From positions 1,054,001-1,118,000 of the forward strand of contig NIVC01000012.1 of the NCBI GenBank assembly GCA_002269645.1: a stretch of DNA of 64,000 nt, written 5' to 3'. Below are positions 11,428 through 63,100 of the stretch, piece after piece. A program made the position numbers and the translations under genes. Origin of the DNA: Macrostomum lignano. Taxonomy: Eukaryota. How positions within the stretch are numbered: the stretch's first letter is position 1; each line of letters begins with the position of its first letter. The notes under the pieces are model-generated. The model saw only the letters and a list, made by a program, of their open reading frames with translations, had not been told where the DNA came from and ran no database searches.

Positions 11428-12288
11428 TTATGAAGCCACAACAGACTCATAAGACGGAGGCGATTGATAAGACAGCTGCTGCTGCTGCTGCTGTGGATAA
11501 GGTTGCAAAGTAATCAAATGTTGAGCAGATGGCGGCTGAGTTGTCATCAAATGCTGGGCAGCTTTGTACGCACGATACCGTTTATACATAGTATAACCAG
11601 CGATTATAGATACGAAGACAATAACTGCAGCAACAATGACAGTGTACAGAATGTCATTTGATCTGTTATCGCCCAATTCTGGAGCTGGATTGCCTTTCTG
11701 TTTGTAATATTTGCACATTTTGTAGTCCTCATCGGCGCTGCTTGAGCATGCTTCTCTTTTATCGCAAAGATTGCTGCATTTATAATAGCCTGTCTTTAAC
11801 GCCTTGCCTGTGTCAAGAAAAATTTTATTGCGTCCGTAATCGCAGGTGCAATAGCATTCGAATGTACAAGTGGAACAGCTTGGCCAATCAAATGTTGCAC
11901 ATGGTGAGCACAAAGTGCAATCAGAGTACCAATCCACGGTAGCGCCGCTACTACCACTACTTCGAGTAGCAAACAATCTGTCCCTGTTACACTGATCCCG
12001 CCATTCACTGTAACAGGATACAGCTATGGGAGTATTTGATGTTTTATTAATCTGCAGCCATGCGCAGAATGCTTCGCTATATTGCCTGTAGCACTGATAA
12101 ATTGCCATTGGTATTGTGCGCTGTTTTGGTGCCAGTTTTTGCAACTCCAGATTAGCTTTATAAGACGCTTTGGTACTAGAATTTGTATAGTCAAATGAGA
12201 CAGCTATTGACATTGAGCAAAACAGGCACAGCGATACAACTAGTAGGGACACTGGTGATGCTGACATGTTGATTAGTCTAATCTTCAT
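11428..12288 (-). CDS. Type-I membrane protein, paralogue 2 (intronless, 286 aa; Cys-rich, partial LDLa, TM, PPSY tail)
   Basis: Long non-repetitive ORF; hydrophobic N-terminus, CSNLCDKREAC..DEDYKMC, TM ILYTVIVAAVIVFVSIIAGY, C-terminal SPPSYESV. Confidence 0.9.
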   Translation of the reverse strand: MKIRLINMSASPVSLLVVSLCLFCSMSIAVSFDYTNSSTKASYKANLELQKLAPKQRTIPMAIYQCYRQYSEAFCAWLQINKTSNTPIAVSCYSEWRDQCNRDRLFATRSSGSSGATVDWYSDCTLCSPCATFDWPSCSTCTFECYCTCDYGRNKIFLDTGKALKTGYYKCSNLCDKREACSSSADEDYKMCKYYKQKGNPAPELGDNRSNDILYTVIVAAVIVFVSIIAGYTMYKRYRAYKAAQHLMTTQPPSAQHLITLQPYPQQQQQQLSYQSPPSYESVVAS

Positions 12289-12344
12289 CTGTGTTTTAAC
12301 ATAAATGTATTAACAACATATTTGATTGGTTGATATGGACAGGA

Positions 12345-14467: not shown

Positions 14468-15352
14468 TCAAGACTTGACCGCGGAATCGTAAGCTGGCGG
14501 AGGTGGCATATCCTGCTGACGGGGAGGTTCAGCATTATCAGCAAGGGTAGACAATGCCAAAGCTGACGGAGCCTTTTGCATTCGCTTCAAATGCTTATTG
14601 TAGGATGAGCATTTTATGCAGCAGTACATCGAAGCCAAGAGGAGTATTACAAATCCAGTGACGCCGATTACACTATATAACAGTATCGCATCAGATGAAA
14701 TTTTAAAGTCTGGCGCCGGATCGCCAACCTGTTTATAATATCGGCACTGCAAGTCTCCCTCATCTCTATTAGACGGATATGGTCCGCCGCAGTCGGTGAC
14801 GCCATCGCAAAACTGATTACACGGATAGACGTCTACACTGGGATCGTCAGATTCCCAACTGTACTCATTGCCGTAGCGTCGATGAGCGCAGGTGCAATAG
14901 CAAACCAGCCTGCAATTTGGACAATCTGACCAACTATATTGAGCACAGGGTGAGCACAGACTGCATTGAGTCGAATTGCGATTATATCGAATAACACTAC
15001 TAGTAGTAGACGAATATGGATATGGATTGGCCTTTTTGACACCTTTAAATTCTTTTATGCGTCGATTGCACTGGCGTTGGAATTCGTTGAAACAGGATAC
15101 AGCTACAACTGGACTGCCTGGTGCCAAGTCGTCTACGGCTAACCAGGTACAGAATGAGTTTTTATTGCCCTGCTTATGGCACAGATTAACAGCTACAGCT
15201 ATTGTTCTCAGGTTAGGAGCCAAGCGCTTCAGTTCGTTGTTGGCCTTAATTGTTGCGTTCCATTCGGCACTGTTGGCGAAGTTGTAAAATGCGCACTGAG
15301 CTGAGCGCAATGTTACTAATATTAGTAGAGATATAATACACACTCCATGCAT
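14468..15352 (-). CDS. Type-I membrane protein, paralogue 3 (intronless, 294 aa; Cys-rich, partial LDLa, TM, PPAY tail)
   Basis: Signal peptide, CNQFCDGVTDC..DEGDLQC, TM ILLYSVIGVTGFVILLLASMY, C-terminal PPPPAYDS; same Cys spacing as paralogue 2. Confidence 0.9.
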   Translation of the reverse strand: MHGVCIISLLILVTLRSAQCAFYNFANSAEWNATIKANNELKRLAPNLRTIAVAVNLCHKQGNKNSFCTWLAVDDLAPGSPVVAVSCFNEFQRQCNRRIKEFKGVKKANPYPYSSTTSSVIRYNRNSTQCSLCSPCAQYSWSDCPNCRLVCYCTCAHRRYGNEYSWESDDPSVDVYPCNQFCDGVTDCGGPYPSNRDEGDLQCRYYKQVGDPAPDFKISSDAILLYSVIGVTGFVILLLASMYCCIKCSSYNKHLKRMQKAPSALALSTLADNAEPPRQQDMPPPPAYDSAVKS

Positions 15353-15464
15353 CGCTATTTGTCTGGTCTATTAGCATGCATTATTGTGAAAAACGAGCAT
15401 TACATAACAGCGGTTTTTATGAGTTCATGCGTGTTGGTAGCTTTTAGAATCATTTAGTGGATGG

Positions 15465-36088: not shown

Positions 36089-41785
<5,697 letters not shown>

Positions 41786-42574: not shown

Positions 42575-42958
42575 TAGATTTGATGATGAGATGCGATAAT
42601 TTGATGATGAGATGCAATACTTAGATGATGAGATGCGATACTTAGATGATGAGATGCGATAATTAGATGATGAGATGCGATACTTAGATGATGAGATGCG
42701 ATAATTAGATGATGAGATGCGATAATTTGATGATGAGATGCGATAATTTGATGATGAGATGCAATACTTAGATGATGAGATGCGATAATTAGATGATGAG
42801 ATGCGATACTTAGATGATGAGATGCGATAATTAGATGATGAGATGCGATACTTAGATGATGAGATGCGATACTTAGATGATGAGATGCGATACTTAGATG
42901 ATGAGATGCGATAATTAGATGATGAGATGCGATAATTAGATGATGAGGTGCGATGATT
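42575..42958. repeat. 21-bp minisatellite (AGATGATGAGATGCGATAATT/ACTT)n
   Basis: About 18 units. Confidence 0.93.
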
Positions 42959-43434
42959 AGTCCGTGGTTAGCATGAAATCTCTCAATTCAATCTAACACA
43001 TAGTCATAATTCATAATCTGACTCTAAAGAACTTTCCAGACAAATGTTGCTTTGCAATTAGCCGATACGTCAACATTTTTGGCGCCGAACTTGATGTATT
43101 AGGCTAATCCGGCAGCTTAGATAAACGTCGACTGTTGATACGACAAATGATGAATAAATCTATTGCATGAATAGTATAAACCAGACATATACCGGTGGCT
43201 TATATGGTTCTGAAAAATCTCCTTTTTGCTTTTAGCCATCCATCCAATCAACTCTGTATGTCCTCAGAGGTAGGGGTTTAAAATCAGTCAGATAGGTCTG
43301 TCTGTAGGTCTATCTGTAGATATGAAAGTAGTAAACGGATTGTAGACAGATTTTTGCTATCTCTGAGATAAATGATGTGTGTAAATGTCTCCATGAGTCA
43401 ATGTGTTCGTCACGAAATGCTATACTTGAGTTTC

Positions 43435-45070
43435 TATGGCCTTACCTGAGGTTTCCATGGCTCTTTACCTGAGGTTTCCATGGCTCTTTACCTGAAGTTT
43501 CCATGGCCCTTTACCTGAGGTTTCCATGGCCCTTAACCTGAGGTTTCCATAGCTCTTTACCTGAGGTTTCCATGGCCCTTTACCTGAGGTTTCCATGGCC
43601 CTTTACCTGAGGTTTACGTGGCGCTTTACCTGAGGTTTTCATGGCTTTACCTGAAGTTTCCATGGCCCTTAACCTGAGGTTTCCATGGCTCTTTACCTGA
43701 GGTTTCCATGGCTCTTTACCTGAGGTTTCCATGGCCCTTTACCTGAGGTTTCCATGGCCCTTTACCTGAGGTTTACGTGGCGCTTTACCTGAGGTTTTCA
43801 TGGCTTTACCTGAAGTTTCCATGGCCCTTAACCTGAGGTTTCCATGGCCCTTTACCTGAGGTTTCCATGGCTCTTTACCTGAGGTTTCCATGGCCCTTTA
43901 CCTGAGGTTTCCATGGCCCTTTACCTGAGGTTTCCATGGCCCTTTACCTGAGGTTTACGTGGCCCTTTACCTGAGGTTTCCATGGCCCTTTACCTGAGGT
44001 TTCCATGGCCCTTTACCTGAGGTTTCTATGGCCCTTTACCTGAGGTTTCCATGGCTCTTTACCTGATGTTTCCATGACTTTGACTGAAGTTTCCATAGCT
44101 TAACCTGAGATTTCCAAGGCGCTTTGCCTGAGGTTTCCATGGAGCTATACCTGAGCGTTGCACAGCGCTAGCTGATTTCATAGAACATTACACGCCTAAA
44201 CTGTACGCAAGCACGCGCTCACACAGGGTGTACACAACGGCCCTGAATTTTCTAATCGTCGGGCATGTACAGTCTGTGCCTGAGGGGGGGGTCGGCTTTC
44301 ATGGCAGCGAATCGCACGACAGCCCACTGGCTAATTTTCGCGCACACAAGCGTACCAGGGAAAATTCTTCAAAGGAATGAAACATGTCCATAATTTTTAT
44401 CGGAATAAGGCCGATTGTGAATAGGGCCTCAGGTAAAGGGCCATGGAAACCTCAGGTAAAGGTCTATAGAAACCTCAGGTAAAGCCATGAATACCTCAGG
44501 TAAAGCCATGGAAACCTCAGGTAAAGGTCTATAGAAACCTCAGGTAAAGCCATGAATACCTCAGGTAAAGGTCTATAGAAACCTCAGGTAAAGCCATGGA
44601 AACCTCAGGTAAAGGTCTATAGAAACCTCAGGTAAAGCCATGGAAACCTCAGGTAAAGGTCTATAGAAACCTCAGGTAAAGCCATGGAAGCCTCAGGTAA
44701 AGGTCTATAGAAACCTCAGGTAAAGCCATGAATACCTCAGGTAAAGCCATGGAAAACTCAGGTAAAGGTCTATAGAAACCTCAGGTAAAGCCATGAATAC
44801 CTCAGGTAAAGGTCTATAGAAACCTCAGGTAAAGCCATGGAAGCCTCAGGTAAAGGTCTATAGAAACCTCAGGTAAAGCCATGGAAACCTCAGGTAAAGG
44901 TCTATAGAAACCTCAGGTAAAGCCATGAATACCTCAGGTAAATCTCTATAGAAACCTCAAGTAAAGAGCCATGAAAACCTCAGGTAAAGGTCTATAGAAA
45001 CCTCAGGTAAAGGTCTATAGAAACCTCAGGTAAAGCCATGGAAACCTCAGGTAAAGCCATGGAAACCTCA
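43435..45070. repeat. Two oppositely oriented arrays of one 21-23-bp motif (43435-44150 CTGAGGTTTCCATGGCCCTTTAC; 44425-45070 GTAAAGCCATGGAAACCTCAG) around a ~270-bp spacer
   Basis: Right-array units are reverse complements of left-array units; spacer has a diverged SINE-like body (~44200-44300). Confidence 0.9.
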
Positions 45071-45583
45071 ATGGAAAGCAATGGAATATCCATGGAGGAC
45101 TAGCTGAATTTCCCAGAGTAAAGTGTTGAGAAGTGTCAACAACAAGGGCAGGCGGAGTAGCATTCCACCCACTCTGGAATAGTGCGCGGTGTTCAGTGCT
45201 CAGTGCTTTAGAAACTCAATTGCATTTAATTCTGAAAGTTCTTATTGAACTTTACTGTGCACGCGAGCAAGTCAAATAGACCACACTGAATTGAATACAA
45301 TTGCATGCAGAAAACTCTTGAGAGTTGCCTGTTTGACTGATAGCTGTCATCAAACAAACAAATTCTGCATCATATTCATAGGCATGCAAGACTGCAGTCT
45401 CTGCTCCGCTCTTCTCACGGAAAAGCAGAAAAGTCAAACAACGTCGCTCCTTGGACCGGAAACACGTGCCAATCCGAAGCGCATAAATTCGCAACTACTG
45501 TCCAGCTACTCAAGAATTCAATTTCAAATTCGACTTAATCTACACACAGATCCAAGACTCGACTCGACTGGACTCAAACAATC

Positions 45584-45772
45584 ATGAAGTGGCAGCTCGC
45601 TCTCGGACTTTTGCTGTGCGCCGCCCTGGTCGTCGCCGTCCCCACCCAGGAGGAGAAGGCCATGGCCGAACGTGTGCTGGAGGAGACTCTGTCCAACATT
45701 GACGAGTCCAGCATGTCACTGGACCTGAAGAAGAAGATCTTCAGGGTTAGGGCCAGGATCCATATTGGTTAG
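45584..45772 (+). CDS. Small secreted prepro-peptide (62 aa): signal peptide, acidic propiece, cationic C-terminal peptide KKKIFRVRARIHI-G
   Basis: GC-rich coding-like ORF; only synonymous substitutions and an in-frame indel versus its inverted copy. Confidence 0.8.
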   Translation: MKWQLALGLLLCAALVVAVPTQEEKAMAERVLEETLSNIDESSMSLDLKKKIFRVRARIHIG

Positions 45773-47267
45773 ATCTGAGACTGGCAACTGACCGGACTCT
45801 GAACTCTGACTGTAAACCGCCCAAATCTCAATGTAGAGGGTCTTCTTGCATATCTATTTGCCGATTCAGTTTTGCCAAATATATCAGCAGCAAAACATTG
45901 TTTCAGCAACCCATTGTACGCTTCGTCTTGTTTTCCTTTATGAAACATTAAAAATTAAAACATTGACACATATTTTATTCAGCAAATCATATGGAGATAC
46001 GAGCGTAGCAGAAATCGGCATGGCTAATAAACTGTTTAGTATACATCCATATCTACAAATTCAGACCTGAATGGATAGATGGATAGATCAATCGAAAGGA
46101 TCGAATTACACCAGTGTACATCATCATGTACAGTATAGTCTCAGAGAGGGGAAATACATTTGCACCGGTGTATGCAGTTGATCAACTTTCGATTGATTTT
46201 AGGGACTAAAATTTGAATAGCAATCCAGAAGTATGCAACTGCATATAGATAAAAATAGACTTGATTGATCATAGAATCTCACCTGAACGTTCCCATCTCC
46301 GCGTCGATATTTATTACTTAAAGTAATACATGTATAACGTCACGTCCGTTGGCATGTGTGAGGTTGACAAAAGGAGAAAGATTTGGGCAGGGACTGCTCA
46401 ATACTAAGGACAGAAAACTGGCGACTCAAGCGAAAAAGTCTTGGAGATCAACTCTACGTATAAGTCTTCTTTGATATCTCTAGCTTATTTACATGTAGGA
46501 GCTTGCCTGCAGTTTCATCTCCTGGAGTCAGATTTTCACAAAACTGCTACACACCAGAAATCGAGTGGAAATGCTTGTAATCCTGAAATTAAAATATGGC
46601 CACAAAATGCCGCTAAAGTCATACCGTTAGCTATACGTACAATATACAATATACTTTAGCTATATGTAAAAAGTTTGAAGGCGTTCAATAAATAGCAGAA
46701 AGTGAAGTATATAACATCTGTATGGAACAGCTAGCATCTGTATGAATCAGATGACGGGACTGATCACTGTGAAACGGCTCCGCCCGTCTCAAGAACCACG
46801 ACACCTCTTGCTGGCAGGCGTTGCCGATGATTTTCGTCTATGAGCAACAAAAAAGAAGCTGCGCATGGAATCGAAGCTCATATTTTAGGTTCTCGTAGTT
46901 CGATGCGAATCAGATGCGTCTCCCGCTGAGCTGCCTCAGCGTTGTAGGCGGGTGCGAATTAATGCACTGTAAAATATTATACGTACAATTTACCAGTCCA
47001 GTTTGCGAAAAAAAATTGACAGACGGCAGATTGTTGAATTTCTTCCTTTGAATCATTTGATTCAAAATTCTTCCTTTCTTCATTCTGAAGAGTTATTCAC
47101 AACATTCAGTCCGGTATTCCAGAAAAAAACAAGACAAAGGTATATTGTTTTGCTGCTGATATATTTGGCAAAACTGATCGGTAGATATTAGAATTTAAAC
47201 CCTCTACATTGAGATTTGGGCGGTTTACAGTCAGAGTTCAGAGTCCGGTCAGTTGCCAGTCTTAGAT

Positions 47268-47468
47268 CTAACCAATATGGATCCTGGCCCTAACCCTGAA
47301 GATCTTCTTCTTCAGGTCCAGTGCCTTCTCCTCCGACATGCTGGACTCGTCAATGTTGGACAGAGTCTCCTCCAGCACGCGTTCGGCCATGGCCTTCTCC
47401 TCCTGGGTGGGCACAGCGACGACCAGGGCGGCGCACAGCAAAAGTCCGAGAGCGAGCTGCCACTTCAT
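47268..47468 (-). CDS. Small secreted prepro-peptide (66 aa), inverted copy with a second EEKA motif
   Basis: Identical protein except a 4-aa indel. Confidence 0.8.
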   Translation of the reverse strand: MKWQLALGLLLCAALVVAVPTQEEKAMAERVLEETLSNIDESSMSEEKALDLKKKIFRVRARIHIG

Positions 47469-48383
47469 GATTGTTTGAGTCCAGTCGAGTCGAGTCTTGG
47501 ATCTGTGTGTAGATTAAGTCGAATTTGAAATTGAATTCTTGAGTAGCTGGTAGTTGCGAATTTATGCGCTTCGGATTGGCACGTGTTTCCGGTCCAAGGA
47601 GCGACGTTGTTTGACTTTTCTGCTTTTACGCGAGAAGAGCGGAGCAGAGACTGCAGTCTTGCATGCCTATGAATATGATGCAGAATTTGTTTGTTTGATG
47701 ACAGCTATCAGTCAAACAGGCAACTCTCAAGAGTTTTCTCCGCGTTTTCTATTTTACTCTTTCTTGCATACACAGTAAAGTTTAACAAGATCTTTCAGAA
47801 TTAAATGCAATTGAGTTTCTAAAGCACTGAGCACTGAACACGGTGCACTATTAGAGACTCGCTGGAATGCTACTCCGCCAGTTCTCTTTGTTGACACGTC
47901 TTAGACACTTTGCTCCGGAAAATTCCCTAAGAACTACAGAGATCTCGGACTCCTTGAAGACGAAGCAACATTGGGTCTCAGTCGGTAGTAATCTCTTGTG
48001 GGATGCCTCAGTTCCTGTACACAAACAATAAACTTGCAGTTTTGTAGAGCAACTCACGTGCAACTCCCTCAAACAGGTCGCTGTGCGGCTCTGTTCTCGG
48101 TTCCTTCCGATCGGCAACTTGGTCTGGTCAGCATGCACTATCCAATGCGGTTTGAAGCTCTTTTCGCTGATGTCAAAATCTTCTGTATGCAGAGCAGCCG
48201 TCGACGAACTTCCCGATATAGCCGACTTTCACTCTTTGCTTCCAGTACTTCAATTTCTTAACTTCACGGAGTCTGATAATTCCACGTTCAGTATTCACTC
48301 AGTTGAGAGTGCGGTCAGCCGAGATTTTTTTCAATTGAATCACAAAGACAACGCCAAATCGATTTTAGATAAAGCACATATAA

Positions 48384-48510
48384 ACCGAGCTTAACCCTGA
48401 GCCACTTCTTAGTGTTGTTGACGTCATTCTCCGACACATTGGGCTCGTCCAGATTGGAGTTGGACAGATCGAGTCTCCTCCAGCATACGTTCGCCTATGG
48501 CCTTCTCTTC
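48384..48510 (-). pseudogene. 5'-truncated, frameshifted paralogue of the prepro-peptide gene
   Basis: EEKAIGERMLEET, then 4-nt insertion (CGAT), then LSNSNLDEPNVSENDVNNTKKWLRVKLG; signal-peptide part absent, Gypsy remnant begins immediately upstream. Confidence 0.7.
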
Positions 48511-48539
48511 CGACGGCTGCTTATTTTCTAAATAAACCC

Positions 48540-57015: not shown

Positions 57016-57172
57016 CCAAGCATGGTAATGAGACCAGTTTTTTCTTAGAATAGGCATTCAGACTGTCATTTTATAGCACTAAAACCTTTTAAATACCTTA
57101 TGCTGTGAATATGGCAAGGGAAAGCATGTTATATTTGACTAGTAGATATATATTTCATTTCATGCAGCAAAA

Positions 57173-60100
57173 ATGAGCAGCGAAACAGACAATCTTGGCC
57201 CGCTGGCTTCGCCACTTAGCGATGCAGCCAATCGGTTTGGTGGCGGCAGCGGCAAGCAGCGAATGTCAGTGGAAAAAATCTACCAGAAGAAGACTCAATT
57301 GGAGCACATATTGCTCCGGCCGGACACCTATATTGGCTCAGTAGAAAGTGTCCGCCAGAACATGTGGGTCTACGATTCCACCGCTAAACGCATGATTGAA
57401 CGCGAGATCACGTTCGTGCCTGGCCTCTATAAAATCTTCGACGAAGTGCTGGTCAATGCGGCGGATAATAAACAGCGCGATCCCGGCATGTCCTGCATTC
57501 GCATCACCATCAGCAAGGAGGACAATCTCATCGAAGTGTGGAACAATGGCAAAGGCATCCCAGTAGTTGAGCACAAGAAAGAGAAGCTCTATGTTCCAAC
57601 GCTAATCTTTGGTCACTTATTGACGTCTAGCAATTTTAATGATAGCGAGAAGAAAACTACGGGAGGTCGAAACGGCTACGGAGCGAAACTGTGCAACGTC
57701 TACAGTCGCCAATTCACTGTTGAGACCTCGTGCAAAGAGTCCGGGAAACGGTTCCAACAGACTTGGACTGACAATATGGGCAAAGCTGGCGAAGCTAAGA
57801 TTATGAAAAATGGCGCCGAAGATTATACTAAGGTAGGTTAATCCACCTGACAAATTTATGGCCTTTGATAAGCATTTTCTGCTCTCTGGATAATCTCCGT
57901 TCAAATTCTCACATGTATCTGGATTAATCCTTAATCAAATTCTCACCGATAGCTGGATAATCTCCCTTCAAAGTCTCACAGATATCAGGATAATCTCTCT
58001 TCAAAGTCTCACAGATATCAGGATAATCTCCCTTCAAAGTCTCACAGATATCAGGATAATCTCCCTTCAAAGTCTCACAGATATCAGGATAATCTCCCTT
58101 CAAAGTCTCACAGATATCAGGATAATCTCTCTTCAAAGTCTCAGATATCTGAATAAGTTTCATTTGAAAGTCTATTTTTTAAGTTTCGATAATAATCCAT
58201 TCTAAGTCTTACTAATGTTTCGATAATCTCACTGAATAGTCACACATAATCTCATGAGTCTCTTTTCAAAGTCCCTTGAAAGTTTCAGTAGCCTGTTTAA
58301 GACGATACCGTGATAATAATCACTAAAGAATCATTGCAAACAACTCACTAGTGAATCCATATCGAGGCTGGGGCGAATTTTGTGACTTTTAAGCGACTGA
58401 AACGACAACGACTGTAATGGCGACTGTTGAGTCGCTAAAAAGGGACTTCAAAGTCAAGTTCAGGCGCTTAACTTTCTACTAACTTCAAGTAGACTAAATA
58501 GAGTTTTAAAAATGCAAAATTTGATTCCAATTTATAAAGTGATGCAGATGCGCTTTAGACGCCACTCAGCGATTCTACAGCGACTCTAGCGCGACCCAGA
58601 TATGACTCTACGGCCGCAGACGCCTCAAACTGATTCTTAGGCGACTTATAAAGTCACTTCTTTTCCATTTTTACCTGTGTTACCCGCAACGACTATGGAG
58701 CGACGCAAGTGGCTCAATGACGCTTCTTAGCTAAGGCACCGTTTGCATCGGATAGTCTCTTAATCTCCTGTAGTTTATTGATGATCTCCTATTGATCGCA
58801 AATTATGAAGGTATTAAACAATGCCCGTTGTCAGTCAAATTAATCAGTTATATCGCAATCTTTGCAGGTGAGCTTCAAGCCGGACCTCACGAAATTCGGC
58901 ATGACCGAACTGGATGACGACACGATCGCCTTGTTCAGCCGTCGGGCTTTCGACATTGCCGGCACTTGCAGCGGCGTTCGAGTGTTTCTCAACGGCGAGA
59001 AACTGCCGGTCACTTCGTTTAAGGACTATTACAGATTGTACCTCACAGAGAAGGAGGACAAAGAGGTGGCTATTATTAAAAGTGGCCGATGGGAGCTGGC
59101 TGTTTGTCTGAGCAACGACGGATTTAAGCAGGTAAAGTTTTGAGCATTAATACTAAGTAATGTAATTTAGTTGTGATTTGTGATTAGGGGCACCCTAATT
59201 ATCACCCGAGGATGAGGTGAGTACGCTACTTTAATTAGGGTAATTATCACCTCTGAGCATGAGGTGGGTAGGCCTCTATTAATTAGCTAATTATCACCTC
59301 TAAGCTTGAGTTGGTTGCGCCACTCTAATTAGAGTAATTATTACCTGTGAGCGTGAGATGGTTGCGCTACTCTAATTAGGGTAATTATCACCTCTGAGCG
59401 TGAGGTGGGTAGGCCTCTAATTGGCTAATTATCACCTCTGAGCTTGAGGTGGTTGCGCCACTTTAATTAGGGTAATTATTACCTGTGAGTGTTAGGTGGT
59501 TGCGCTACTCTAATTAGGTTTTAATTATCACCTCTGAGCGTGAGGTGAGTGCGCCGCTTTAATTAGGGTAATTATCACCTCTGAGCGTGAGGTGAGTGCG
59601 CCGCTTTAATTAGGGTAATTATCACCTCTGAGCGTCAGGTGAGTGCGCCGCTTTAATTAGGGTAATTATTACCTCTGAGCGTGAGGTGGGTGCGCGCCTC
59701 TCTAATTAATAATTACTTCTGGCCAAGTGGAAGATGGTTGCACCTGTTTAATTCAATATTAATTATCGCCTTTAGGATGTTATTATTACACGGTAAATTA
59801 TGCTGCTGGCTACTGGGCACAGGTACGCAGTGTACATCCATTCAGAGTTTTTTCGTTGAGATTCACGCGCGAGTTCACAATTCACAGAATCGAACCCGGG
59901 ACTTTAGCGCAAAATTTTCTAAAATAAGAAAATAAATTTCGATACATATCGGAGATCCACTTATATTTGAAACCTTCAACTTCTCCACAGGTCAGCTTTG
60001 TGAACTCAATCGCCACCACCAAAGGCGGCCGTCACGTTGACTTTGTCTGCGACCTGCTGCTCAAACGCCTTGTCGACGCAATCGACGGCAAGTGCAAAGC

Positions 60101-63100
60101 CGACAAGAAGAATCTGAAAGGCTCCATCAAGCCGGCATTTGTGAAAAATCACCTGTGGATCTTCTGCAACTGTCTAATTGAGAATCCCAGCTTCGACTCG
60201 CAAACTAAAGAGTTCATGACTTTGCAAGCGAAGAAATTTGGCAGCGCGCCAGAATTGGACGACAAATTCTTTAAGAAGCTTCTGTCCGAAGACTGCGGTA
60301 TTGTCCGGTGCGTCCTTGAGTACGCCGACTTCAAGACCAACAAAGCTCTGAATCAGCGAACCAAAGCCAGTAAGAAGACGTTCCACGAGAAACTCGACCA
60401 TGCTAACAATGCTGGCAAAGGCGAGTGCGTTCTGATCCTGACTGAGGGCGATTCGGCCAAGTCCCTGGCTGTGGCCGGTGCCAGCTCCCTGCCGGACGGC
60501 CGAGACAGGTTCGGCGTGTTCCCGCTGAAAGGTAAACTATTGAATGTTCGCGAGGCTAGCAAGGACCAGCTAATGAATAACAAGGAGATCAAAGTTATTC
60601 AGGACGCTGTGAACTTGCAGTACGGCAAAAAGTACAACACAGTGGAAGATTTGAAGTCGCTCAGGTATCGGCATATTATGATCATGACCGATCAGGACCA
60701 GGACGGCTCGCATATCAAAGGACTCATCATTAACTTTATTCACTTCTTCTGGCCCGAGCTGCTGCGTCACGACTTCTTGCAGGTGAGTAGTTTGACTCAT
60801 TCAGTATTGAACCGCATTTACACTCGCTTAGAAATAGCCCTTAAATCCAACCTGGCAATGGCCCTAATCTGTCTTAGGAATCATCCCTAATCCATCCTTT
60901 AGTATCTTCCCTAATCCACTCCGAGAATCGTCACTAATCCACCCTGAGAATCGCCACTAATCCACCCCGAGAATCGCCACTAATCCACCCTGAGAATCGC
61001 CATTAATCCACCCTGAGAATCGCTCTAAATCCACTCTGAGAATCGCCCAAAATCCACTTTGAGAATCGCCCTAAATCCACTCTGAGAATCGCCCTAAATC
61101 CACTTTGAGAATCGCCCTAAATCCACTCTGAGAATCGCCCCAAATCCACCCTGAGAATCGCCCCCAATCCACCCTGAGAATCGCCCCAAATCCACCTTGA
61201 GAATCGCCCCAAATCCACCCTGAGAATCGCCCCAAATCCACCCTGAGAATCGCCCCAAATCCACCCTGAGAATCGCCCTAAATCCACCCTGAGAATCGCC
61301 CCTAATCCACCCTGAGAATCTCCCTAAATCCACCCTGAGAATCGCCCTAAATCCACCCTGAGAATCGCCCTAAATCCACCCTGAGAATCGCCCTAAATCC
61401 GTATTACTGTCTCAAGAATTGCCAACCCACACGGTAAAGCCTATCAATAACCATGGCAACCCCTGCAGGAGTTCATCACGCCAATCGTGAAGGTGACCAA
61501 GCGCGACCAGGTGAAAGCATTCTATTCCATGCCGGAATTTGACGAATGGCGCGGCCAGACGCCCGACTGGCACAAGTGGCACGTGAAATACTACAAAGGT
61601 TTGGGCACCTCGACGGCTAAAGAGGGCCGCGAATATTTTCGCGACATGCGTCGGCACTGCGTCCGATTTATACGACGCGATCAGACCGACGAGGAGTCGA
61701 TTCTGATGGCATTCGGCAAGAACGCCGACATGCGAAAAGACTGGCTGTTGAAGTTCATGGACGATCGGAAGCGCAGGGCCGACCTTGGCCTGCCCGAGGC
61801 CTACCTGTACGAGAAGACAACCAGAGAGATTAGCTACAACGATTTCGTGCACAAGGAGCTGGTGCTATTCTCAAATGCCGATAATGAGCGATCCATTCCG
61901 TCTCTGGTTGACGGACTGAAGCCTGGACAGCGGAAGGTCATGTACACCTGTTTTAAGCGCAATCTGCTCAAGGAGATTAAGGTGAGATCCTATATACTAA
62001 AAATGATCCTATCGAAATAGACAGGTAGATATGGTCACTAAGACAGGTAGATACAGACACTAAAACAGGTAGATATGGTCACTAAGACAGGTAGATATGG
62101 TCACTAAGACAGGTAGATATAAACACTAAGACAGGTAGATATGGTCACTAAAACAGGTAGATATGGTCACTAAGACAGGTAGATACAGACACTGAGACAG
62201 GTAGATATAGACACTAAGACAGGTAGATATGGTCACTAAGACAGGTAGATACAGACACTGAGACAGGTAGATATAGACACTAAGACAGGTAGATATGGTC
62301 ACTAAGACAGGTAGATACAGACACTAAAACAGGTAGATATGGTCACTAAGACAGGTAGATATGGTCACTAAGACAGGTAGATATAAACACTAAGACAGGT
62401 AGATATGGTCACTAAGACAGGTAGATACAGACACTGAGACAGGTAGATATAGACACTAAGACAGGTAGATATGGTCACTAAGACAGGTAGATATGGTCAC
62501 TAAGACAGGTAGATATGGTCACTAAGACAGGTAGATATGGTCACTAAGACAGGTAGATACAGACACTAAGACAGGTAGATACAGAAGACAGGTAGATACA
62601 GACACTAAGACAGGTAGATATGGTCACTAAGACAGGTAGATACAGACACTGAGACAGGTAGATATGGTCACTAAGACAGGTAGATATAGACACTAAGACA
62701 GGTAGATATGGTCACTAAAACAGGTAGATATGGTCACTAAGACAGGTAGATATGGTCACTAAGACAGGTAGATACAGACACTAAGACAGGTAGATACAGA
62801 AGACAGGTAGATACAGACTGTAAGACAGGTAGATACAGACACTAAGACAGGTAGATATGGTCACTAAGACAGGTAGATATGGTCACTAAGACAGGTAGAT
62901 ACAGACACTGAGACAGGTAGATACAGACACTGAGACAGGTAGATACAGACACTGAGACAGGTAGATACAGACACTGAGACAGGTAGATACAGACACTGAG
63001 ACAGGTAGATATGGTCACTAAGACAGGTAGATATAGACACTAAGACAGGTAGATATGGACACTAAGACAGGTAGATACAGACACTAAGCAAGGTAGATAC

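Follow-up and report, generated by a model that had tools for sequence, protein, structure and literature searches.

Two convergent genes of Macrostomum lignano belong to a large family of probable secretory prepropeptides with a possible role in host defence

We have analyzed a stretch of 64,000 nucleotides from the genome of the flatworm Macrostomum lignano (the window) and found that it carries two intact, transcribed members of a large family of probable secretory prepropeptides. According to the ORF calls they are single-exon, convergent paralogues of 62 (copy A) and 66 amino acids (copy B). The preliminary description of this DNA had spoken of a small family, but a six-frame search of the assembly detected no fewer than 150 loci, all with a single exon and most of them densely clustered (13 genes within 40 kb, 17 within 62 kb). 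So far the family is known almost solely from this species. Searches of Pfam, PDB and 1.84 billion representative proteins gave no relatives beyond M. lignano and one contig of another organism (L041). The features of the window are:

45129..45900, + strand: arm A of the duplication, with promoter, 5'UTR, CDS and about 125 nt of 3' sequence (repeat search, pairwise alignment)
45458..45488, + strand: promoter block of copy A, GGAAACACGTGCCAATCCGAAGCGCATAAAT (conserved in 16 paralogue upstream regions and in L041)
45584..45772, + strand: CDS of copy A, 62 aa plus stop, single exon (family HMM E = 3.9e-32)
45584..45637, + strand: signal peptide of copy A, MKWQLALGLLLCAALVVA, predicted cut after Ala18 (rule-based)
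45638..45727, + strand: acidic propiece of copy A, VPTQEEKAMAERVLEETLSNIDESSMSLDL, without the EEKA found in copy B
45728..45736, + strand: Lys-Lys-Lys of copy A, putative convertase site (KK/KKK in 36/36 family proteins)
45737..45769, + strand: tail of copy A, IFRVRARIHI plus Gly (terminal Gly invariant in the subfamily alignment)
47140..47901, - strand: arm B, second gene unit, convergent with arm A (repeat search, pairwise alignment)
47268..47468, - strand: CDS of copy B, 66 aa plus stop (family HMM E = 1.4e-37)
47271-47303, - strand: tail of copy B plus Gly
47304-47312, - strand: Lys-Lys-Lys of copy B
47313-47414, - strand: propiece of copy B
about 47322-47333, - strand: additional EEKA of copy B
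47415-47468, - strand: signal peptide of copy B
47560..47590, - strand: promoter block of copy B, same sequence block (genome motif match)
48378..48514, - strand: decayed third copy, a pseudogene fragment (direct repeat, HMM matches in two frames, alignment)

The translated ORF of copy A is MKWQLALGLLLCAALVVAVPTQEEKAMAERVLEETLSNIDESSMSLDLKKKIFRVRARIHIG (62 aa), and the protein of copy B is the same with one additional EEKA. Both the ORFs and the DNA alignment bear out the two convergent copies in an inverted duplication that had been noticed before, and the coding sequences differ, as described, by exactly three substitutions (GCC/GCT, GTC/GTG and CGT/CGC), all synonymous, and one in-frame indel of 12 nt. 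Regarding transcription, the GenBank gene models of this assembly derive only from RNA-seq, and one of them (P0016, on the window's contig and listed with copy B) provides indirect evidence of transcripts.

Arm A is one complete gene unit, 99% identical to arm B in the duplication core, which extends from about -275 to +103 nt around the CDS. Within the core, conservation of the flanks (three substitutions and a 4-nt indel over about 378 nt) equals that of the CDS (three substitutions in 189 nt). Because of this, the argument for constraint made originally from the A/B pair alone is not supported, and the synonymous character of all the substitutions is weak evidence of it; the evidence for constraint comes from the whole family. 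The nearest counterparts of arm B were found in two other contigs (C1113 and C4132), with 7-8 differences in 629 nt, and both carry the same inverted pair with the two copies of 66 aa. Judging from these alignments, only copy A of the window's contig has the 12-nt deletion, and the duplication predates the split of the three genome copies (window contig, C1113 and C4132). Satellites adjoin the gene pair of the window, as does the decayed third copy, which occupies the 48.3-48.5 kb end of the interval originally described. This copy retains the propiece and a KKWLRVKLG-type tail, is frameshifted (the alignment shows a 10-nt insertion and deletions of 3 and 2 nt), and both its signal peptide and its promoter are absent.

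To characterize the family we compared 36 distinct family proteins. All 36 have a common plan: signal peptide, acidic propiece, Lys-Lys site and hypervariable basic tail. By rule-based prediction, the 18-aa signal peptide is made of one basic residue followed by a 15-residue hydrophobic core, and in 36/36 paralogues positions -3 and -1 are A/V and position +2 is Pro. The signal of copy A has a single charged residue (K2) and a mean Kyte-Doolittle value of 2.47 over residues 4-18. Net charge of the propiece ranges from -5 to -12 (about -7 in the window's subfamily), and KK or KKK is found ahead of every tail. Tails are 6-34 aa long and end in Gly (29/36), Gly-Lys (6/36) or Gly-Lys-Arg (1/36), the last two being classical amidation signals. 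In the alignment of subfamilies that are 43-50% identical to the window protein K54, K55 and G66 are invariant; a few distant members are devoid of the terminal Gly (P0041, P0042 and P0045).

The layout of signal, acidic propiece, basic site and Gly as amide donor had been proposed from the two copies, and the invariance of Lys-Lys and terminal Gly across subfamilies upholds it. These family-wide data support a predicted dibasic cleavage and C-terminal amidation far more than the A/B pair alone. From this conservation we infer secretion, cleavage and amidation, and consider it likely that the family members are processed, amidated secretory peptide precursors. The predicted product of both window genes would be IFRVRARIHI-NH2, with a computed mass of 1278.815 Da, or its Lys-extended form; the Gly-extended form would have 1336.820 Da. 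We found 44 matches to Cu2_monoox_C (PF03712) in the genome, at a domain level that does not separate PHM from DBH-like enzymes, and 37 domain-level matches to P_proprotein (PF01483), the P domain of proprotein convertases. Convertases use Lys-Lys less commonly than Lys-Arg, and this counts against the proposed processing.

The different parts of the precursor evolve at different rates. The signal has a dN/dS of 0.2-0.3, compared with about 0.5 for the tail and about 0.9-1.1 for the propiece. The signal also has the lowest dS, a value that ranges from 0.25 to 0.65 in the family. Hence, the signal is conserved, and propiece and tail evolve fast. A conserved signal with a variable product is the pattern of the precursors of frog-skin peptides and conotoxins. 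Besides, 148 of the 150 genomic matches are free of internal stops, and the indels among intact copies are all in frame.

Upstream of the genes, about 100-125 nt from the ATG, there is a family-specific promoter block that holds an E-box-like CACGTG, a CCAAT and a TATA-like CATAAAT. It is kept in 16 paralogue upstream regions and also in the contig of the other organism, and gave 77 genomic matches versus 0 for the reversed control. Being compact and common to at least 77 loci, it could be used to identify the regulator and the cell type in which the genes are expressed.

The tails could be classified as RV-type, His-type and long Arg/Trp/Tyr-type; one Pro/Arg-repeat tail occurs in L041. Among paralogues, which are not phylogenetically independent, the hydrophobic moment was maximal at 160-180 degrees in 14/14 distinct short tails (180 degrees for the window peptide), and the charges of tail (+1 to +17) and propiece (-5 to -12) were correlated with r = -0.90. 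The alternating pattern first noticed in the window is thus present in every distinct short tail, and to judge from their residues they look like amphipathic beta-strands, with hydrophobic and basic residues alternating. An AlphaFold model was all-helical and of low confidence, uninformative on this point. The mature peptide of the window has a predicted net charge of about +4, and this and all the other Arg-type tails, such as FVRVRVRL and WLRVRARVRI, are cationic and amphipathic. The His-type paralogues (GFHVHFH, FIHIHF and FHLHLP, each followed by Gly) have no more than about +1 at neutral pH and thus match a classical cationic membrane-active peptide poorly.

The preliminary description did not recognise the family, and correctly so, since nothing outside the family itself matched in Pfam, PDB or the large protein database. 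The same searches gave no homology to any described antimicrobial peptide (AMP) family, and for this reason the likeness to AMP precursors is one of kind, not membership of a named family. We also considered the Pfam family PF22991 (Lock_Gag1-like), which the window proteins match with 20.3 and 13.0 bits over about 20 acidic residues. The cut-off is 27 bits, which one paralogue, whose propiece is duplicated, just passes with 27.1. We judged this to be a low-complexity chance match.

Our best explanation is the following. The 18-residue signal peptide would direct the precursor into the ER and be cut after Ala18, and the acidic propiece (net -7 in the window's subfamily) would neutralise the basic tail in transport and storage. 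A furin/PC2-type convertase would then cut after Lys-Lys(-Lys), a carboxypeptidase would trim the remaining basic residues, and a peptidylglycine alpha-amidating enzyme would use the terminal Gly to give IFRVRARIHI-NH2 or KIFRVRARIHI-NH2. The product may be an amphipathic beta-strand of 10-11 residues, with a face of F/V/A/I/I and another of R/R/R/H and a charge of about +4, that would bind anionic surfaces, most likely microbial membranes or envelopes, acting as a host-defence effector. The family could thus be described as a cassette in which constant promoter, signal and propiece would carry fast-diversifying tails. From the interpretation given in the preliminary description, the precursor layout, the alternating tail and the unrecognised family are supported, and the small family and the constraint based on the pair alone are not.

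A conserved secretory cassette with a diversifying product, arranged in clusters, counts for a host-defence precursor, whereas the very short predicted products (6-10 aa) count against it. Taken as a whole, the chain from processed, amidated secretory peptide to defence effector falls just short of being probable in our estimation. The host-defence or antimicrobial role in itself is our best guess, but a tentative one, somewhat on the doubtful side; the membrane activity and the biological role of the peptides are likewise putative.

Published expression data were found for RNA815_1838.3, a long-tail relative outside the window's subfamily and the sole member with a published localisation. In situ hybridisation assigned it to 'gonads' (Ramm et al. 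2019, listed in Table S11 of PMC7336406), and the published 364-nt in situ probe, including both primers, maps exactly to a long-tail family gene. No family k-mers appeared among the other listed probe primers. In positional RNA-seq this transcript had 93 reads in fragments made of the head alone, 94 when testes were included and 49 when ovaries were included, and was coded 0,0,0, meaning that neither gonad brought a gain. Its normalised log2 expression was -11.48 for the head alone and -10.99 for the whole worm. Reads were modest, had no regional bias and were present in gonad-free head fragments, so that the 'gonads' label and the positional RNA-seq are in conflict. The transcript is not tail-specific either (D versus C, +1.6 log2, below the study threshold of 2). 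A prostate-limited seminal fluid protein was discarded, the transcript being listed under 'gonads' and not prostate. Where gland or rhabdite cells and neurons had been suggested as alternative sites, this relative points to neither. Since it shows no epidermal, gut or gland defence tissue, its expression counts against the defence role.

A different explanation is that these are reproduction-related peptides, secreted from in or around the gonads and acting on gametes, eggs or the mating partner. They could for example coat or protect eggs or sperm, or be fast-evolving molecules of sexual conflict. The in situ label, assigned by a probe whose two primers fit the family gene exactly, stems from a study of socially sensitive transcripts, and reproductive genes of Macrostomum typically evolve fast and are confined to a lineage (PMC7336406). 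The shared promoter block suggests co-regulated subfamilies, and in Hydra periculin-1, with its anionic N-terminus and cationic C-terminus, is found in the female germline (PMC12466427). However, the read counts (93/94/49, coded 0,0,0) reveal no gain from either gonad and the localisation comes from a long-tail relative, not from the RV-type subfamily of the window. We regard this explanation as unlikely; it overlaps with a role in defence if the peptides serve to guard gametes or embryos against microbes, as Hydra periculins do.

It is quite unlikely that the peptides are self-assembling or metal-binding instead of membrane-active, serving in granule packing or as secreted material (mucus or rhabdite matrix, eggshell, adhesive or release factor), with His-type tails binding Zn2+/Cu2+. 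All the short tails have beta periodicity, strict alternation is the classic design of cross-beta fibrils, and GFHVHFH, FIHIHF and FHLHLP closely resemble the Zn-binding amyloid designs LHLHLRL and IHIHIQI (PMC10008563). The very high copy number would also suit a bulk secretory product. But Arg-type tails, one face of which bears +3 to +5, would be expected to repel one another when no polyanion is there, the read counts of RNA815_1838.3 are modest, unlike those of a bulk product, and hypervariability is unusual in a structural material. A related and similarly unlikely idea is a natural cassette whose single conserved promoter, signal and acidic propiece would deliver ultra-short, strictly alternating peptide amides that pass from soluble to self-assembled beta-sheet on metal ions or polyanionic surfaces, such as microbial envelopes or the surfaces of eggs and sperm. 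If so, the His-type branch would be nature's equivalent of the amyloid heptapeptides designed for Zn-dependent catalysis or other functions, and the Arg-type peptides of the window the membrane- or polyanion-directed arm.

That these are neuropeptide or hormone precursors, giving amidated signals that act on receptors, is very unlikely. The signal, the dibasic site and the C-terminal Gly, Gly-Lys or Gly-Lys-Arg do follow the processing grammar of neuropeptides, some of which are made as one peptide per small precursor. Nevertheless, conservation is inverted for a ligand (the signal is kept and the product is hypervariable in sequence and length, 6-34 aa), there are at least 150 loci, RNA815_1838.3 is not enriched in the head and no known neuropeptide family was matched in Pfam or the protein database searches. 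Specifically, the flatworm FLP, NPF and npp-type families were rejected: there is no mature motif conserved among paralogues, the signal being the conserved part. Finally, it is extremely improbable that the ORFs lack a peptide function and ride on repeated or mobile DNA, or that the inverted copies matter only as a source of hairpin or dsRNA: the unit is present at least 150 times, often as inverted pairs, and the flanks of the window's pair are conserved like the CDS with satellites and a decayed copy alongside, but 148/150 frames are open at a family dS of 0.25-0.65, intact copies have in-frame indels, the dN/dS of the signal is 0.2-0.3, KK, Gly, charge balance and periodicity are kept while the sequence changes, the unconstrained copy (48378..48514) visibly decays, and neither transposon protein domains nor terminal repeats were noticed near the family units.

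Returning to the defence reading, canonical lophotrochozoan AMP families are absent from flatworms, whose AMP repertoire is undescribed (PMC10414684). The pipeline of that work dropped peptides under 10 aa and single-genome groups, so it would likely have missed this family. The present family could be the first antimicrobial arsenal in a free-living flatworm. If the products are real and active they would make up a large and rapidly evolving set of effectors in an animal amenable to genetics, as transgenesis, RNAi and in situ hybridisation are established in M. lignano (PMC5730564, PMC7336406). One could then directly test the ways in which an animal that regenerates and is rich in stem cells deals with microbes or shields its gametes, how a constant secretory cassette diversifies its cargo, and whether alternating peptide amides of 6-10 residues, so far known mainly from peptide design, have a natural use at all. 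Were the switch to beta-sheet on metal ions or polyanions true, these would be gene-encoded, massively amplified minimal beta-strand effectors with no described animal equivalent. Even with inactive peptides, this would still be a clear case of explosive birth-and-death evolution in a taxon-restricted secreted gene family.

Several known systems resemble this one. Frog-skin preprodermaseptins have a conserved signal, an acidic spacer, a basic site and a hypervariable cationic peptide, often amidated via Gly or Gly-Lys. The order of the parts is the same as in M. lignano, and both are multigene families with a constant cassette and a fast-changing product. The flatworm family differs in having no sequence similarity to dermaseptins, Lys-Lys instead of Lys-Arg, single-exon genes, a far higher copy number and predicted products that are mostly alternating beta-strands of 6-10 residues, whereas those of dermaseptins are helices of 20-30 residues. 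In cathelicidins, one conserved pro-region bears C-terminal peptides of very different length and type. The M. lignano family also has a constant pro-region, with beta-strand-like, His-rich or long Arg/Trp/Tyr-rich tails, but it is a short acidic propiece without a cathelin domain, and the predicted processing is by dibasic cleavage and amidation, not by elastase or proteinase 3.

The arminins and periculins of Hydra are, like this family, lineage-restricted and secreted, with an anionic N-terminal and a cationic C-terminal part. The germline-expressed periculin-1 controls the bacterial colonisation of embryos (PMC12466427) and the active part of arminin is its cationic C-terminal region (PMC12466427). 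They are not homologous to the M. lignano family and are longer (about 30 aa, helical), periculin having 8 Cys; the M. lignano family has many more members, with tails that are far shorter and more diverse. The designed heptapeptides Ac-LHLHLRL-NH2 and Ac-IHIHIQI-NH2 form catalytic cross-beta fibrils with outward-facing, Zn-binding His (PMC10008563). They are N-acetylated, and share with the His-type paralogues, located elsewhere in the genome and not in the two genes of the window, the alternating hydrophobic/His pattern and a C-terminal amide, predicted in the latter. The synthetic 8-mer IK8L (IRIKIRIK) forms beta-sheets and is reported to be broadly bactericidal with low cytotoxicity (PMC4330034). 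IK8L is man-made, whereas the M. lignano peptides, of putative activity, are gene-encoded and mainly Arg-based, some with His. The design is nonetheless shared with IFRVRARIHI, FVRVRVRL and WLRVRARVRI: 8-10 residues, alternately hydrophobic and basic.

We have confirmed the two convergent copies, both intact and lying in an inverted duplication, by their open frames, by repeat finding and by pairwise alignment, which gave a core identity of 99% between the arms (approximately 45129-45900 and 47140-47901).

Features of the gene pair and its relic
45584..45772, + strand: coding sequence of copy A, encoding MKWQLALGLLLCAALVVAVPTQEEKAMAERVLEETLSNIDESSMSLDLKKKIFRVRARIHIG (62 aa; ORF translation)
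47268..47468, - strand: coding sequence of copy B, the copy A protein with an extra EEKA (66 aa; ORF translation)
45458-45488, + strand: promoter block of copy A (pattern match)
47560-47590, - strand: promoter block of copy B (pattern match)
approximately 48378-48514, - strand: third copy, a decaying relic with a 10-nt insertion and deletions of 3 nt and 2 nt, lacking signal peptide and promoter

In the DNA alignment the coding sequences differ, exactly as the preliminary description had it, by three substitutions (GCC/GCT, GTC/GTG and CGT/CGC), synonymous in all three cases, and by a sole indel of 12 nt, in frame. The constraint argued from this pair was not supported. In the duplication core (approximately -275 to +103 nt around the coding sequence) the flanks carry 3 substitutions and one 4-nt indel per ~378 nt, compared with 3 substitutions per 189 nt of coding sequence, so that both are equally conserved, and the divergence between the copies is concentrated at the arm edges. 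The window pair alone therefore says little on selection, and we do not take its three synonymous substitutions to prove any. The same inverted pair is present in two other contigs of the assembly, C1113 and C4132. Copy A is nearest to their minus-strand copy (9-11 differences in 615 nt) and copy B to their plus-strand copy (7-8 differences in 629 nt), while the paralogues differ at 39-47 positions. The duplication is thus older than the divergence of these three genome copies; among them, only copy A of the window contig carries the 12-nt deletion. Around the spacer (45900-47140) the 99% identical convergent copies stand ~1.5 kb apart, an arrangement kept on the three contigs; read-through across the pair would give a long hairpin RNA.

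Micro- and minisatellites are very abundant in the window. Two satellite arrays (43423-44155 and 44427-45086), with units of 23 nt (~32 copies) and 44/88/241 nt, are located directly upstream of copy A and are mutual reverse complements (82-90% inverted matches); together they make up another inverted structure, larger than the gene pair and next to it. Further tandem arrays are found at 40000-40715 (20-nt unit x 36), 41269-41699 ((CTAA) x 108) and 42578-42960 (21-nt unit x 18), and long repeat-derived ORFs at 3.9-5.5, 7.4-10.3, 25-26, 31-32, 36.7-37.5, 39-41 and 52.3-52.9 kb.

Other genes in the window
11431-12309 and 14471-15367, - strand: paralogous open frames of 293 aa and 299 aa
32020-32661, + strand: frataxin-like exon (Frataxin_Cyay, E = 6.3e-36)
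36092-36703 and 36992-37855, - strand: Cys-loop ligand-gated ion channel exons (Pfam Neur_chan_memb, E = 2.6e-19 and 4.9e-23)
57146-57838 and 59928-60887, + strand: HATPase_c, DNA_gyraseB and Toprim exons (Pfam)

The last group together looks like a type II DNA topoisomerase and, with the frataxin-like exon, is an ordinary housekeeping neighbour. The 293- and 299-aa frames had no Pfam match; by eye, the two share Cys-rich motifs (LCSPCA..., CYCTC), and each has one hydrophobic stretch at the N-terminus and one close to the C-terminus. They may represent a further pair of membrane proteins restricted to the lineage.

The anatomy of the precursors was compared over 56 gene copies coding for 36 distinct proteins (~190 kb of paralogous sequence), together with database proteins. 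The processing layout proposed for the window genes was found in 36 of 36 distinct proteins: a signal of 18 residues with one Lys or Arg before the hydrophobic core, a cut region in which positions -3 and -1 are A/V and +2 is Pro, then 30-37 residues of acidic propiece and a Lys-Lys or Lys-Lys-Lys site. The basic tail ends in Gly (29/36), Gly-Lys (6/36) or Gly-Lys-Arg (1/36). An alignment of 16 sequences, with subfamilies just 43-50% identical to the window protein, kept M1, W3, Q4, L7-L10, A13, P20, D40, K54, K55 and the terminal G66 invariant. The tails themselves fall into Arg-type alternating ones (IFRVRARIHI, FVRVRVRL, WLRVRARVRI and others), His-type ones (GFHVHFH, FIHIHF, FHLHLP) and long Arg/Trp/Tyr-rich ones of 28-34 residues, e.g. 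WRIRFRRIRIRWRRVYRVVRTAYRIYRHLPFP followed by Gly-Lys; among more distant members there is one Pro/Arg-repeat tail and a few tails have no final Gly. Invariant Lys-Lys and terminal Gly, plus Gly-Lys and Gly-Lys-Arg signals, are what is expected if the tail is excised and amidated, and they are the strongest support for this model, a family-wide support not visible from the window alone. We consider it probable that the window genes are genuine precursors of secreted peptides, cut at Lys-Lys and C-terminally amidated. Protamine-like nuclear basic proteins were rejected, given the signal peptide and the acidic propiece. At the domain level, the genome has 44 matches to PHM/DBH-type copper monooxygenase domains (best 129.8 bits) and 37 to proprotein-convertase P domains, a complement consistent with cleavage and amidation. 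On contigs C757, C861, C4862 and C3975, copper type II monooxygenase (PHM/DBH-like) C-terminal domains (59-72 bits) are clustered within tens of kb, many in tandem, a clustering unusual in number and notable alongside a large, putatively amidated peptide family.

The family had been described as small. A six-frame search of the 764-Mb assembly gave instead at least 150 genomic matches, all single-exon and 148 of them without a stop; about 90 of these loci are outside the sequence-level comparison. Blocks of at least 95% identity make up 180 Mb of this assembly, a known redundancy (PMC5730564), and the distinct loci per haploid set are therefore fewer than 150. Elsewhere in the genome the genes form dense clusters of mixed orientation with ~3-kb spacing, e.g. 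13 genes per 40 kb and 17 per 62 kb on contig C181. Two paralogues of this contig (L021 4402-4620 and L022 6200-6418) end in ...KKWLRVRARVRVG-SRRR-SRSG, where a run of Arg separates one Gly inside the tail from another at its end. This resembles an extension by stop-codon change, and each paralogue might give two products. The signal and part of the propiece are duplicated internally in P0035 (Mlig001477.g4) and the propiece in P0010 (Mlig004661.g1); these may be real in-gene tandem duplications or assembly/annotation joins of neighbouring copies.

The preliminary reading had not recognised the family, rightly, since there is no real Pfam or PDB match and the proteins are essentially those of M. 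lignano. The Pfam search gave nothing above threshold (Lock_Gag1-like and ATP19 were rejected as sub-threshold chance matches) and the PDB profile search no match. Word-index searches, with divergent members also used as queries, found no other proteins beyond M. lignano, and an exhaustive profile search of 1.84 billion representatives found only M. lignano, save a Salvia match, rejected as spurious, and one Logan contig. The latter (run SRR31628392, 929 nt) is 70-81% identical in nucleotides to the M. lignano genes over signal and propiece only; it comes therefore from another organism, presumably a relative. The family appears taxon-restricted, yet not strictly limited to one species. These searches weakly support absence elsewhere, since few proteins of other Macrostomum species are publicly available.

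A promoter block (GGAAACACGTGCC...CATAAAT) ~100-125 nt before the ATG is common to 16 paralogues representing all subfamilies, and alignment of upstream regions showed it in the SRR31628392 contig too. Its layout is (C)CGGAAA[C/A]ACGTGCC[A/G]A, then 8-10 nt, then GCATAAAT, including an E-box-like CACGTG, a CCAAT and a TATA-like element. The pattern had 77 matches genome-wide versus 0 for the reversed control, almost all adjoining family coding sequences. Blocks outside the list of matches to the window protein (C852:121883, C1632:122154, C1608:117728, C2480:30835, C1664:80745 and C1664:89331, the last just upstream of a coding sequence matching the SRR31628392 contig) may mark members that have diverged, or else other genes controlled in the same way. 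The GenBank gene models of this assembly derive solely from RNA-seq assemblies and TransDecoder ORFs (PMC5730564), and there are dozens for the family, one of them on the window's contig; this is indirect evidence that the family is transcribed, and it speaks against the absence of transcripts, which the preliminary description had named as a refutation. The exact window protein has no database record; the closest proteins are 'hypothetical protein BOX15_Mlig...' of Macrostomum lignano. In older gene sets family genes are fused to neighbours as 'domain-containing protein' (Neur_chan_LBD or SERPIN); the ion channel exons nearby probably account for one such fusion, the 1047-aa 'Neur_chan_LBD domain-containing protein' P0017.

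Selection was estimated by pairwise Nei-Gojobori comparison of 44 distinct coding sequences.

Selection by precursor segment
Signal: dN/dS 0.2-0.3; dS 0.13-0.25 (lowest)
Propiece: dN/dS 0.9-1.1 (0.39 within the His-type subfamily); dS 0.23-0.30
Lys-Lys and tail: dN/dS ~0.5; dS 0.20-0.65

The frames have stayed open despite this divergence, any indel that separates intact copies keeps the frame, and the unconstrained copy of the window is decaying, all of which argue for real genes under selection.

The alternating hydrophobic and basic pattern of the tail, first proposed for the window peptide, was recovered in all 14 distinct short tails, with the largest hydrophobic moment at 160-180 degrees (beta-strand periodicity), and in several long tails the peak was near 105 degrees (helical). 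The predicted window peptide (free N-terminus, amide) has a net charge of ~+4 and faces formed by F, V, A, I, I and by R, R, R, H. Calculated masses are 1278.815 Da for IFRVRARIHI-NH2 ([M+2H]2+ 640.415, [M+3H]3+ 427.279), 1406.910 Da for KIFRVRARIHI-NH2 and 1336.820 Da for the Gly-extended acid. Propiece charge (-5 to -12) is correlated with tail charge (+1 to +17; r = -0.90, the paralogues being non-independent points), which fits a propiece that neutralises the tail. An AlphaFold2 model (16-sequence alignment) was all helical with low confidence (pLDDT 64.6) and was disregarded as uninformative.

Host defence is the best-supported reading of the role of these peptides, although we propose it tentatively and it may well prove wrong. 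It is suggested by the cationic amphipathic products, by a propiece that balances their charge, by cargo that diversifies within a conserved cassette and by clustered birth-and-death evolution. Besides, the synthetic look-alike IRIKIRIK, with similar cationic alternation, is described as broadly bactericidal (PMC4330034), and flatworms miss the canonical AMP families, their own repertoire being undescribed (PMC10414684). A reproductive role is a rival and possibly the same thing, if the peptides protect gametes or eggs from microbes as periculin does in Hydra (PMC12466427). This is favored by the in situ pattern 'gonads' of the 501-nt transcript RNA815_1838.3 (reference Ramm et al. 2019, gene Mlig001477.g4; PMC7336406 Table S11), whose primers are both exact matches, 364 nt apart, at locus L038, where the amplicon spans the long-tail gene MRWQFVLG...KKWLGRRRRVRIRWRKVLRLVYRIYRHMPLGK. 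However, positional RNA-seq, with 36-nt multi-mapping reads from unreplicated samples, counted 93 reads in the head, 94 in head + testes, 49 in head + testes + ovaries and 176 in the whole worm, coded 0,0,0 (PMC4490696), so the transcript is in gonad-free tissue with no gain from either gonad and the two sources disagree. Neither gave any sign of head (brain) enrichment or prostate-limited expression. These data concern one family member, a long-tail gene and not one of the window's Arg-type subfamily. Family k-mers were absent from the primers of the other in situ probes listed, and six family gene ids from the supplements of PMC5730564, PMC5946080, PMC5816591 and PMC12896417 and from the main texts searched. 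Self-assembly or metal binding is a rival that would draw on the likeness of the His-type tails to the designed Zn-binding amyloid peptides LHLHLRL and IHIHIQI, with the same alternation (PMC10008563). Neuropeptide signalling is disfavored, since the pattern of conservation is inverted, the copy number is high and head enrichment is lacking. The absence of any function is disfavored too, by the frames and invariant residues that the family has maintained, and on the same basis transposon cargo was rejected.

The literature search found no papers describing the family; its genes do carry annotations, though solely as hypothetical proteins. In kind, it would be a new, unrelated example of a well-known layout, in which a signal and an acidic propiece precede a basic site and an amidated cationic peptide. 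The family is unusual in how far it has expanded, in how extremely short and strictly alternating many of its products are, and in having a His-type branch. In typical neuropeptide genes the ligand is the conserved part, the opposite of this family, in which it is the signal. In the precursors of frog-skin peptides and conotoxins, on the other hand, the signal is conserved and the product changes fast, the same pattern that we have found here.
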